From Setoptus koraiensis (Eukaryota > Animalia > Arthropoda), in NCBI GenBank assembly GCA_048013815.1, contig CM106585.1, forward strand, positions 14,322,001 to 14,386,000: a stretch of DNA of 64,000 nucleotides. The letters are read 5' to 3'. How positions within the stretch are numbered: the stretch's first letter is position 1; the number at the start of each line of letters is the position of its first letter. Made by a program: the position numbers and the translations under genes. Below are positions 35,082 through 40,300 of the stretch, piece by piece. The notes beneath the pieces are model-generated. The model was not told the origin of the DNA and did not search any database. It saw nothing but the letters and a program-made list of their open reading frames with translations.

Positions 35082-36182
35082 CTGCAAATTTGGTTGTTGG
35101 TGTCAGGAAGAAAGGGAGCGCGCGCGACGCTTGGCACGCACAAACGCACAACAATAATCAGAGTAGAGGAGAAAAAATGTACGGGCGCCAAGTGACGGGA
35201 GCAGCGGGCCAAAAGGGGGGGAGCCAGTTAGGCCAGCGAGCGAGACAGAGCAGATTGGCCGCTGAATGGCGCACATTGAATGTGCAGCGGCTTCACTTCC
35301 GCCTTATATTGGTATATCCGTTTGATAGTGGCATGCTGCTCAGTGTTATTTGTTTCAATCAGCTGCTGGCTGTTGAACCCTTTATCCGGCCCAGCTCAAC
35401 AGCAACAACAGCAGCAGCAACAACAACGACAACAACAGCAGCAACAACAACAACAACTGCACTGTGCATTGCACAGTGTGTAACCGTAGCTGTTTGGCCG
35501 TTTGTTTGTGTCGTTTTGCGCCACTTTGAGTCGTCGCACCACACACGCACACACCCACACACGTACACACACACACCGACACGAGTTGTAGTCACGAGTG
35601 ACTCAACACAATGGACGAGCACCAGTTTAAAGCGAGTTTTCAGCGGCACACACACACACACACACACACACACAGCCTGTGCGAGCTGGATATTACGTAA
35701 TGCGCGCAATACGTAATGCGCGAGCAAACAAACTGACAAGCAGCGAGACAGCGCGCAAAGATGCAAATCAGCAGTCTTGCCACACAATGTGCACAGCCTG
35801 GCCAGACTGTGCTGCCAGTTAGCAGGCGCAGGCACAGGCCAGCCAGAGTTGGCAAAAGTTTGTTGTGCGCCTAGCTGCGTTCGCGAGTTTAACAACGAGA
35901 ATCACAATTCGTTTGCGATCGCTGCCGAGCAATTGCGATTGAGTAACTGTAACTCACATGACACTGACGCGTGAGTTAGTTGCTGATGCAAGCGCGTGCT
36001 GTTGCGCAACAACTTGCAACAAGCACGCGCTGCCACGTACGCGCGACCGTGTAATGCTAGATTAAACATCATGAATCATCACACATAGAGGGCAGTGTTA
36101 GATTGTCATTATGCTTATGCAGTTATTGTTAGATAGATAAGCAACACGATTAACGAGCACACAATAATAACAATAGTATTAC

Positions 36183-37361
36183 CGTTTTTCGCTTGCTGCT
36201 GCTGCTTCTGGCTGTTGCTTGTGGCGCCGCCTACGTTAAAGGCGCTTATTATCATATTTGACATGGAGTGAATGGACGAAGCAGATGATTTCTTTCTTGT
36301 CTTATTGCTATTGCTACTCTGTTGCTGCTTGTTATTGGACGACGACTGGTCTAGTTGTTGATTGCTGGACTTGTTTTGGCACAATGACAATGCAGACGCA
36401 CTACACTTGAGACCCGCCGTGGGTGCGCTCTCGGCTGGGGCGTTGCGTGCACCGGAAGTGTGGCCGGCCTGACCACCGCGGAAGGTGTTAATTAGAAATT
36501 GCTGAATAGAGTTGGTGGAGAAGCGCCTATTGTTGCTGTTGTGGCTGTTGGGGCTGTTGGGGCTGTTGTGGCCGTTGTGGCCATTTTGGCCATTTTGGCC
36601 GGCAGTGATATTGCCAGCGCTATTGGTCAGCTGCGGGTTTGTATTTGGCGCCAAAAGTGTGGACGCTTTCGGCTTGGCGCCCATTGTTTGAATGTAGTTG
36701 GTGTTGTTGTTGTTGTCGGTGTCGGTGTCGGTGTCGGTGTAGCTATTTGACGAGTGCAGCTCACTGCTATTATTGTCTAGACCATAGTTGTATAGACTGG
36801 CTATATCGCCAATATAATGGTTGTTGTATTGTTGTTGTCTATCTAGTTGCTGTGGCAACGACGCCACCAGCTGATTATTACCGTCGACAGCCAATGGCAC
36901 GTTTCCCGTTGACCTAGATGCAGCAGTTATTGCGCCGCCGATATGAAGCTGCTGACTAAACGATGATTGGCTGCTGTAATCACTATCTGGGCTATTGGGG
37001 CTATCACTTGTAACTTTTTGGCCACTTCCGCTTCCCGTCTGGCGGCGCTCGTGCAATGATTGTGGATGTTGCTGCTGTCGGTGTTGTTGTTGATGCTGTG
37101 ATTGTTGTTGTTGTGGTTGCGTTCTTCTGTCGTTGAGTAGCCGGCTCAATAGCGTGGTCATGTTGTTTTGCAAATAATTCAGGCAGGTTAACAGGGCAAA
37201 CAACAAACAAATTGTTGCCACTATTTTCACCAACACCAATTGCGGGCTCAGAGACTCTATTTGCTCCTCGTCCAATGCTAGTTCTAGTTGCTCTAATTCC
37301 TCTATTTGGCCCTCGAACAGAGGCGCCCCGCCGGCCGATTGTATATCCGTGATTTTGAATA
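36183..37361 (-). CDS. Putative alternative exon in CaMKII intron encoding a hydrophobic (TM-like) segment and a long Gln/Asn/Ser-rich region
   Basis: Lies within the 36115-37428 open frame (1.3 kb), which has the same low-complexity style as the CaMKII exons; phase-1 donor AACG|GTAATA at 36182; candidate phase-1 acceptor CTCAAG ending at 37362 (others possible); hydrophobic run LVLVKIVATICLLFALLTCLNYL at 37239-37171; no ATG upstream of that run. Confidence 0.55.
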
Positions 37362-40300
37362 CTTGAGCGAGCCGATTAATTAACTGGCCAGACGCCACCG
37401 GCCAGACGCCACGTGCACCGGCACTCACAATTGGCGAGGTGTCACCGGCGAGCGATTTCGAGCTATTTTAATTGGCGCAACGTGCCCCTCAATTCGCACA
37501 CGGCATGCACCACGTCTCTATAGTGCTACAGTGTTGCCAATCGGATCTGCCGCCATACTTCCTGTTTGAGTTTGTGTGTGTGTGTGTGTGTGTTGATATC
37601 TCTGACAAAGCCTCGTGAATACAAGCTAGCTGAATATAACGCTGGCCCAATATAGCGCTAAATATGAGGCTCCACGTGGCAGCACAATTGGCGCACAGGG
37701 ACACGTTTTGAGCTGTTGGCACGCGCAACATTCATTTGCATAATTGATACGACGATATGTGTGAGGGAGTGTTTATTTAAGCGTGGCCAACATGACTTAT
37801 TTCGACTCAACTAACTTGCATTGTACTGGCCGGCGCGTATAATATAACTAGAATAGCTATCGTGTCACCGTCGGCAAGTGTCAGCCGAGCGATATGTCGT
37901 CGAGTCGTGGTATCTTGGTGCGACGAATTCAGTTCGAATGGCGTATGAATAAGTGGCCTCTTTGAGGATTTGGGCCCTTATCTATTTATACGGCCACATG
38001 CGATATGCGATATAATTATCACGTAATTTTCGATTCATGTCATGTCATTTATTTATGTCATTTATTTATGTCATTTATGTGTGCCGCTGGTGAGTCGAGT
38101 GTCCACTAGTGATTGTGTCATTGTCGTCGTCGTTGCTGTTGCTGTTGTTATCTAATACGTGCTATTACGTAACTTGCTATGGCTTGATGCTGCTTGTTCA
38201 CAGTTGTTGCGCAATCACAACCATCACCGGCCCTTCTAATGATTGCCCGTCTATCTATTGTTGACAACTTCTCTCTACTTTGTTATGTATGTGTGGCTGG
38301 TTATTAATTAGCGCTTGCCTGAGCTTGACAAAACTAGACTCAAAGTTGTGGTGTGTGCTTTTCAAATCGATTGTTGGACCGTTGGAAGGGCAATTGACAC
38401 AAAAAGAAATAACATGGCGCAGTTTGAAATGTTGTAACGACGACTGGGTGTCATTAATGCTGTCTATTATTGCATCTGCTTGCATATACAACAAACATAA
38501 CAGATATGAACAGAGAGAGAGAAAGAAATTATTTTAAGTCGTCGCCACTGAACGGGCCGCCGCCGCCGCCGTGAGCCGACAAACAACAGCAACGACAGCA
38601 ACAACAGCAACAACAACGACAACAGCGAGCAATGAGAGTCTCGGGCGGGGAGTTGCCACTGCTAATGATGAGCCCGAGCTCGCCAAAACGCGCTGAAATG
38701 CCAAGCTCGACTCGGCGGCTTAGCTTGCCAAAACAAAACAAAACAAAACGTGAGCATGGTTGGGGCCGAACGGCAAGTGCGAACGGCGATGCAATTGGAA
38801 ATTGCTCAAGTTGCTGCTGCCGTGTGAGCTGCCGTAAAAGAAGCAGCAAAAACATGAGATAAGCATGAGACGCCTTGATACAATCTCAATGTTTCTCTTG
38901 CCACCATTATCTGTCTGTTGTGTGTGCCCTTTACGGGCTCTTGTTTGCGGCAAGCTCCCGATTTACATGACACACACAACTCACACAAAATTGTGCGGGC
39001 CAACAATCATATCGCACACACGGCACTGTGCAAAGTGTATTTCGCATGTTATTTCACATCATCATCATATAAATAAAAGCGATTTGCATAACGCAACTAG
39101 GCGCTTTTGTGTTGTGTTTTGCGTTGTGTTGAATGGCGCTCTCGCTCGTTGCCAAACGCCACCCAAGTGACACACCGGTCGCCCTGCATGAATGTGGTTG
39201 CTCGCCACAGAAAGAATTGACATGCCAATAGGAAAATATTCGTCCGCTTTCGTTGGATATTTTAGCGTATTTTCGCATTCTCGTATTTTCGCCTATTTTT
39301 GCCAAAATACGCCGAAAATGCCCAAATGCGACACGGCGACATTGCGAGCGAGCCAACGCGTTGCGTTGCGCGCACACAGCAGCACTATGAGCACCTAGCG
39401 ACTTTGCGACTTGGCACGCCAGCCCGACAACAGCAGTGCTGTCGCGCCCCCTAGTTGCGCCCAGCGAAACACGACGGGATAGCGATCCGCACCGCGAGCG
39501 ATCCGCACCGCGAGCGATCCGCACGATAAGCGACAAATCTGAATCTTATCCGCCGAGCATTGCGCCAAACATGTCGCTGTTGGCCGCGCGATACACCTGA
39601 GCAGTCAGGGCCAATAAATGGCTGTCTTATACGCTGGGTCGTTGGTTGGTTTATTGGGGGGCGCCAGCGAGCCGTCACTGGCCAGAGCATGCGAGAGAAC
39701 GCGCCTGAGAATAAGCGGCTCCGAGAATAAGCGGCTCCGAGAATAGGTGAGGCTGAGGATACGTGAGTCTGAGAATTCGTGAGAGAGGCACCAAAAAGTG
39801 CATAAAATATATAGTGATACCAATGCTGCGAGACAAGATTTATGATTGTGTTGCCGGCGGTGAAAACGAGATGTGCCAGCGCAATCTTTTTTCATTTTTT
39901 GACAGCAGTTCAATTGGTGGGGCCCGACGCAAGTGCGGCGCCCGCGCACCCATTCAATACATGATTGATAAACGATTGAGGCGGGGGCCGCTTCGTCTGG
40001 CCCGTCTCCACAAACAAGTTTGTGGGGCCGTCCGCTAGTGGGCGACTAGAGGCAACTGGAGCAGCCAACACAATGGTATCGCGCAGTTGCAGTTGGCGCA
40101 GTTAGGGGGCCCTTTGCCGCCGACATCAGTGCAATAGTAATGCGAATTGGGGGTGCCGAAGCAAGAATGCGATTGATAAGCCAGGTATGTCACCATCAGC
40201 CAGTTTGGCCGGCCTATTCACAGTGGCGCTCACAGCGGAATCAGTCATCTCCGACGGGGGCGACACTCTAACGGACAAACTCAGTCGGCCGGCGTCTCGG

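Follow-up and report, generated by a model that had tools for sequence, protein, structure and literature searches.

Does a long open reading frame lying inside an intron of an arthropod CaMKII gene belong to that gene and, if so, for which product would it be used? The frame is found in a stretch of 64,000 nucleotides from Setoptus koraiensis (assembly GCA_048013815.1, contig CM106585.1, positions 14,322,001 to 14,386,000), which we call the window and whose own numbering is used below. It sits in a 21-kb phase-1 intron of a CaMKII gene referred to here as copy B, on the sense strand, between the exon that codes for the regulatory segment and the linker exon. The first-pass annotation of this DNA proposed three uses for such an exon: (i) to start a kinase-less protein made of an anchor, the linker and the hub (or association domain), similar to alphaKAP, a product of the vertebrate gene Camk2a; (ii) to be included as a cassette in the full-length kinase; (iii) to give an anchored kinase that lacks the hub. 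We find that the frame is a real, conserved coding exon, in sense orientation, inside the CaMKII intron. The reading that we favor, with a probability of about 0.5, is that it would serve as an alternative first coding exon, joined in phase to the linker and the hub, and thus be an analogue of the alphaKAP anchor exon.

The open frame noted by the first-pass annotation between the regulatory and the linker exons is present on the CaMKII strand, and it is longer than was listed: the listed frame, 36115..37428 (-), corresponds to 437 amino acids from a GTG codon, while the frame is actually open from 37467, that is, over 450 codons (37467-36115). This stretch contains no stop in the frame, against 16 to 28 in each of the other five, and the codon score, for which the known exons of the window are the standard, is the best of the six (-0.03, the others ranging from -0.27 to -0.43). 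The 23-residue hydrophobic run at 37239-37171 and the phase-1 donor AACG/GTAATA at 36182 (its GT being 36182-36181) were correctly located by the same annotation (Table 1). No paralogue of the frame was found across the window.

The frame belongs, by sequence comparison, to a family of 15 unannotated proteins. An exhaustive phmmer search of 1.84 billion representatives gave a single match, P0001, a product of 192 amino acids from an unannotated contig, which aligns with the window frame in two colinear blocks; the first consists of the helix and the residues that follow it, the second is a Ser-rich block near the end. Word searches from P0001 and from the alignment of the relatives then gave 13 further members. 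The word search with the whole frame, swamped by words rich in Q, N and S, returned no relative, and the partial products that the contigs of the runs would give had no exact match. All relatives come from unannotated contigs of public sequencing runs; the DNA of ten of them is available, which makes 11 loci including the window.

The alignments (A1 and A2) define a common layout. A variable N-terminal part of 46-264 residues is followed by one hydrophobic helix, then by MTNFISKILGGERRRS, a short spacer, the motif STLSLPRNS, the motif RRxSRSSIHSVSAxLLGAFTGG, another short spacer and N-G, where the similarity ends in every member. The helix has an acidic N-flank and a basic C-flank in all 15 proteins. 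When a profile was built from nine relatives, the window copy being excluded, and compared to the six-frame translation of the window, only the window frame was found, with its two blocks in order. In the closest pair of relatives with DNA, L008 and L011, the synonymous divergence (dS) is 0.24, the nonsynonymous divergence (dN) is 0.048 and dN/dS is 0.20; in this one close pair, the frame is under purifying selection. Conservation of the frame, on which the first-pass annotation had made its proposal depend, is observed.

No known domain identifies these proteins. The Pfam scan of the window frame gave only RHEX/DUF4692, TMEM9, Ctr and DUF4834, all at 15 bits or less against curated cut-offs of 25-33; these families resemble the anchor frame in having one transmembrane helix followed by a polar tail, and they were rejected as its identity since they are below the cut-offs and the match involves nothing but the helix. 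The family members have no Pfam domain above threshold, and P0001 is the only one with a sub-threshold match, to Zip. One sequencing run, SRR29837433, contains two loci (L011 and L016) which carry two clearly different members, P0004 and P0014; this means either that there are two paralogues per genome or that the sample is mixed.

At the nucleotide level, nothing in the family is more strongly conserved than the phase-1 donor. In 11 loci out of 11, the conserved part closes with a GGT codon and the next two bases are AA (giving G/GTAAT or G/GTAAA). GGT accounts for 23% of the Gly codons elsewhere in the family frames, and the probability of finding it at this place in all ten lineages is about 4e-7, a rough figure which treats the ten lineages as independent. 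Measured against the standard consensus, the donor is weak (position +5 is T or A, position -2 is C or T), and its weakness, too, is conserved. Past the donor, the frames of the various loci run into 0-23 unrelated codons before a stop; in L013, the stop comes immediately after the donor (NGN-stop). The second hydrophobic tail described by the first-pass annotation does exist in the window, and is strongly hydrophobic, but it has no counterpart in any relative; it is best read as the start of the intron.

In three lineages, the window, L001 and L007, the anchor exon lies downstream of the CaMKII regulatory exon and on the same strand, and the linker and hub exons follow it in the window and in L001. 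The latter is a 12.4-kb contig from a distant relative, in which the host intron measures about 10.7 kb; one strand of it carries the end of the regulatory exon at 2-46, then the anchor exon at 4928-5477, the linker exon, which begins at about 10731, and the hub at 11682-12404. In L007, which represents a third lineage, the end of the regulatory exon (2-100) is 8.1 kb upstream of the anchor exon. Both ends of the host intron are in phase 1, in L001 as in the window. Since the acceptors of the linker and of the hub are also in phase 1, joining the anchor exon to either of them would keep the frame and, in the case of the linker, even the junction residue would remain Gly.

Past the anchor exon, the comparison of the window with L001 shows no conserved coding blocks other than the CaMKII linker and hub. 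A private 3' coding exon was sought by pairwise comparison downstream of the donor and none was found, the conserved blocks being non-coding. Such blocks are seen about 2 kb downstream of the donor between L001 and L010, and at 1.7-4 kb between L013 and L015; we rejected them as private exons because they have stops and non-triplet indels in every frame; they are regulatory-type elements. Over the 2 kb that follow the donor, neither AATAAA nor ATTAAA occurs in the window, L001, L013 or L015, which is weak evidence when taken alone.

Regarding these non-coding blocks (L001:7500-7660 with L010:3300-3530, and those shared by L013 and L015), one contains TTACGTAA as its core, while TTTGCAT and TGATTGATTAG occur in another. 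On the upstream side, an element of about 60 nucleotides, with stops in all frames, is near identical in divergent relatives (L008:5340-5400, L009:290-350, L011:70-130). The anchor exon follows it at a distance of 1.4-1.75 kb, and the window lacks it. We take it for a probable enhancer or promoter element belonging to the CaMKII intron.

The relatives also tell how the exon begins. Each of the ten with DNA has exactly one ATG in frame ahead of the helix; it stands at the beginning of the open frame, and an in-frame stop precedes it by 0-32 codons. A lone ATG at the head of a frame, just after an in-frame stop, is the signature of a start codon and not of an internal exon. In the family, then, the sequences identify the anchor frame as an initiator exon.

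The protein would have its own ATG and a variable, acidic N-terminal part before a single transmembrane helix; according to the positive-inside rule, the acidic N-flank and the basic C-flank of the helix predict that the part after it is cytosolic. With this orientation, the two conserved RRxS-type motifs, both basic and Ser-rich, would be accessible to basophilic kinases, and the hub could meet the cytosolic CaMKII subunits. An internal promoter within the CaMKII intron may drive the anchor exon, which would be joined to the phase-1 linker exon (28134) or directly to the phase-1 hub exon (24762). The result would be a membrane anchor followed by the linker and the hub, with no kinase. By means of its hub, this protein could assemble with full-length subunits and keep holoenzymes at a membrane.

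AlphaKAP, whose anchor is short, holds CaMKII holoenzymes at the membrane in vertebrate muscle. It is an alternative-promoter product of Camk2a which lacks the kinase domain and keeps the whole association domain (PMC5882894). The anchor exon resembles it in several respects: it would start the product from its own first exon inside a CaMKII gene, it codes for a hydrophobic anchor and for no kinase domain and, according to its phase, it would run into the linker and the whole association domain. The differences are that the anchor exon is far larger (about 180-430 codons), that the helix of the window family is internal, after 46-264 residues, and that this family carries conserved RRxS-type motifs. 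The exhaustive phmmer search, with P0001 as its sole match, revealed no sequence relation to the vertebrate alphaKAP anchor exon, which makes the two analogues and not homologues. No invertebrate counterpart of alphaKAP was found in the literature searched, the coverage of which is partial. More broadly, and with a confidence that falls a little short of even, we suggest that an arthropod-like lineage (at least about ten lineages) may have independently evolved an alphaKAP-like CaMKII product, with a type-III-like anchor, RRxS phospho-motifs and a deliberately weak, conserved donor joined to the linker and hub exons; the one locus would then give a free membrane phosphoprotein when unspliced and a holoenzyme tether when spliced.

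Of option (i), what has stood is the conserved exon with its own ATG in the relatives, its place, strand and phase, and the fact that no private downstream coding exon was found; the start of the window copy and the splicing of its donor are where it falters, and the following observations weigh against it. The window copy has no in-frame ATG ahead of the helix, its first Met being at 37161, just past it. It is also the most divergent member, with a terminal branch of 3.7 changes per column in the family tree. The CaMKII flank can be checked in the window and in the contigs of two relatives, the other contigs being too short or having no CaMKII exon within 4-10 kb. The chance that the phases match fortuitously is one in three. 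The two members found in one sequencing run may mean that a copy exists outside CaMKII.

The other points of this kind come from the read data. No run recorded as RNA contains the stretch. Three runs of unrecorded library kind (X1, X2 and X3) do; they were viewed as contigs only, in which strand, ends and rare joints are not visible. The depth of the X1 contigs is flat, 129-212 over 33800-39799, as for DNA. The same data were deposited twice, as X2 and as X3, in two studies and with different organism labels; record counts and depths hardly differ between the two. The very uneven depth of their contigs suggests that they are probably RNA. If so, a possible transcription unit would extend from near 38.6 kb down to a point between 35.7 and 35.0 kb, the depth dropping between 35702 and 35026 as it does at a 3' end. 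The cover begins about 1.2 kb upstream of the frame, which is consistent with an internal start and not with a cassette exon. As for the donor, the contig 35702-36591 is colinear with the genome across it, and its mean depth (84) is about that of the exon contig (89), so that, if this is RNA, most of it is unspliced at 36183. For that sample, this is the main evidence against efficient joining to the CaMKII exons. It agrees with a donor whose weakness is conserved, and it agrees equally well with a stand-alone gene. The X2/X3 contigs show no joint at 36183, and no spliced product or junction read was seen. A profile search for longer spliced products returned unspliced ones only; it covered proteins of up to 562 amino acids, which is probably below the length expected for the join.

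The alternative that survives best, a live rival although a rather doubtful one, is the separate nested gene that the first-pass annotation had named as the opposing case. In this hypothesis, the frame codes for a small single-pass membrane phosphoprotein, which either ends unspliced in the intron or has a short private 3' exon that would escape detection through its small size or its variability, and which is never joined to CaMKII. The ATG of the relatives suits it as well. In X2/X3, the cover resembles that of a single unspliced unit, about 3 kb long, which extends from 38581 to 35702 or beyond, with equal depth across the donor and a depth of 15 by 35026; the unspliced frame of L013 stops right after the donor; there is no spliced product among the family proteins found; and in L013 no CaMKII exon is seen over the 9.8 kb that precede the anchor exon or the 4.2 kb that follow it. 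Sense-strand nested genes in long animal introns are indeed similar, in that an ATG-started frame, possibly with its own transcription unit, lies in the host intron, and the position is stable in the three lineages where it can be checked. What distinguishes the anchor frame from them is that it ends at a conserved donor of the phase of the host intron, with neither a private 3' exon nor a poly(A) signal found. Constraint on the protein alone does not account for the invariant GGT at the last conserved codon; the C-termini past it are unrelated, no coding block is conserved downstream, and the canonical poly(A) signal is missing within 2 kb in four lineages. The RNA nature of X2/X3 is not on record, and the word searches took proteins of at most 562 amino acids, when join products are expected to be longer.

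It may also be that the family is as we propose and that the copy in this genome is a decaying relic, the N-terminal part having been lost through stops or a frameshift, the rest being open because it is young or of low complexity, and the ancestral protein being no longer made; we consider this improbable. Besides the missing ATG, two in-frame stops part the frame from an upstream frame that starts with ATG and may be the original N-terminus (Table 1). These stops would be removed by a candidate in-frame intron of 96 nucleotides, whose acceptor TTAAAATAG/C resembles that of the known CaMKII exon 2, TCAAAATAG/G; the contigs of the RNA-like run extend into this candidate intron, colinear with the genome. 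The enumeration of upstream ATG exons and introns able to feed the window frame gave many weak candidates. At about 37440-37475 (-), in the frame +2 relative to the open frame, the window codes for IKIARNRSPVTP, which is like the N-terminal KIARGSRPKLP of the long relatives P0013, P0004 and P0012. The presence of a KIARG-like motif in another frame near 37475 hints that the N-terminal part of the window copy is frame-shifted, and decay is possible. The very long branch, the motifs, which are more degenerate than in any relative, and the variants seen in runs over the window frame (3 out of 5 change the residue) go in the same direction. The window copy also has about 250 additional residues, rich in Q, N and S, compared to its relatives. 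On the contrary, the 450 codons without a stop, where every other frame has 16-28, the intact donor, the helix and both motif blocks kept in order, and the raised RNA-like cover over the region all argue against decay. We also observed that GCCAATTR occurs three times within 265 nucleotides directly upstream of the frame (37428-37692, -); there are 13 occurrences in the whole window, and the window-wide count is not significant.

Option (ii), in which the exon would be a cassette, possibly in this genome only, and give a full-length kinase with a membrane-spanning linker, is very unlikely. The acceptor put forward by the first-pass annotation exists: there is an AG at 37363-37362, in phase 1, which would define a symmetric exon of 1179 nucleotides (37361-36183), and a second phase-1 AG is found at 37303. 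The absence of an ATG before the helix in the window copy would suit an internal exon, and both the position between the regulatory segment and the hub and the phase-1 donor are shared with the CaMKII linker (variable-region) exons, the linker exon of copy B (330 nucleotides) being in phase 1 at both ends. However, these two sites, like every AG between 37467 and 37240, score poorly on a simple acceptor score, which is itself too strict for the A-rich acceptors of this genome (that of the known CaMKII exon 2 is A-rich). Unlike linker exons, the anchor exon codes for a transmembrane helix and, in all ten relatives with DNA, begins not with an acceptor but with a start codon that closely follows an in-frame stop. 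Moreover, the X2/X3 cover goes on for 1.2 kb upstream of both acceptors at near-exon depth, and the topology would be awkward, with a transmembrane helix placed between a kinase and a hub that are both cytosolic. Option (iii), a kinase without hub that is anchored by the read-through tail, has hardly any credit left: the tail is present and strongly hydrophobic, and the unspliced cover of X2/X3 would permit its translation, but it is absent from every relative and the option requires the unsupported acceptor of option (ii). Even taken together, these two options keep little probability.

Table 1. Features of the CaMKII copy B locus and read cover around the anchor exon, in window positions. 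A slash marks an exon-intron boundary.
Feature	Position	Strand	Remarks
CaMKII copy B exon: end of kinase domain and regulatory segment	49396..49737	-	donor TTTTCAG/GTGAGT at 49395, phase 1
ATG-started 80-codon frame, same frame as the main open frame, possible original N-terminus	37489..37731	-	cut off by TGA 37491-37489 and TAA 37470-37468
Candidate 96-nucleotide in-frame intron GAA/GTATGG ... TTAAAATAG/C	37463..37558	-	would remove the TGA and TAA stops
Membrane-anchor exon, open coding frame to the donor, 428 codons	36183..37467	-	0 stops; family-profile match E 1e-13
Predicted transmembrane helix LVLVKIVATICLLFALLTCLNYL, 23 residues	37171..37239	-	19-residue Kyte-Doolittle mean up to 2.66; kept in family
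Juxtamembrane motif MTTLLSRLLNDRR (family consensus MTNFISKILGGERRRS)	37123..37161	-	Met invariant in family
Weak internal duplicate of the RRxS...AF.GG motif, RRFSTNSIQQFLINTFRGG	36472..36528	-	not seen in relatives
Basic Ser-rich motif RKKSSASSIHSMSNMIISAFNVGG (consensus RRxSRSSIHSVSAxLLGAFTGG)	36226..36297	-	conserved in alignments and profile
Phase-1 5' splice site ACG/GTAATA, last exon base 36183	36178..36186	-	G/GTAA in 11/11 loci
Read-through tail NTIVIIVCSLIVLLIYLTITA-stop (36180-36115), second hydrophobic run 36174-36118	36115..36182	-	Kyte-Doolittle mean up to 2.93
CaMKII copy B linker exon, 330 nucleotides, candidate splice partner	27805..28134	-	start tatacag/GTCGCTCG; phase 1 both ends
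CaMKII copy B hub (association domain) exon with stop	23555..24762	-	phase-1 acceptor; CaMKII_AD E 1.1e-28
Possible transcription unit, raised X2/X3 depth	35702..38581	.	depth 44-89, against 6-18 either side
X2/X3 contig	33800-34114		depth 5.7
X2/X3 contig	34226-34612		depth 7.2
X2/X3 contig	34586-35026		depth 15
X2/X3 contig	35702-36591		depth 84
X2/X3 contig	36711-37092		depth 89
X2/X3 contig	37063-37484		depth 63
X2/X3 contig	37605-38581		depth 44
X2/X3 contig	38630-39514		depth 18

The window contains a second, compact CaMKII gene, copy A, at 8460-9923 (-). Its regulatory segment and its hub are not separated by an intron, so that copy A lacks an anchor exon. In copy B, the hub is interrupted by long Q-rich inserts and still scores as CaMKII_AD, a trend also seen in L001, and the linker exon (27805-28134) is long and disordered, as it is in that relative. 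Among solved structures, the kinase exon of the window is marginally closest to the CaMKII of Drosophila. The window also contains a duplicated GALNT gene (3810-6853 and 10891-11886, +) and an assembly gap, a run of N at about 21000-21560.

In the literature searched, alphaKAP is the only kinase-less product of a CaMKII gene that has been described as keeping the whole association domain. If the anchor exon is indeed a first exon of CaMKII, an unrelated exon would do the same job in another phylum, which would be a case of convergent gene architecture and would suggest that the tethering of the dodecamer by a kinase-less hub subunit is a recurrent solution. The exon would then also provide a genetically separable handle on the localisation of CaMKII, the kinase being left intact. 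Even as a separate nested gene, the frame would define an unannotated, conserved family of membrane phosphoproteins which is kept in the same CaMKII intron.

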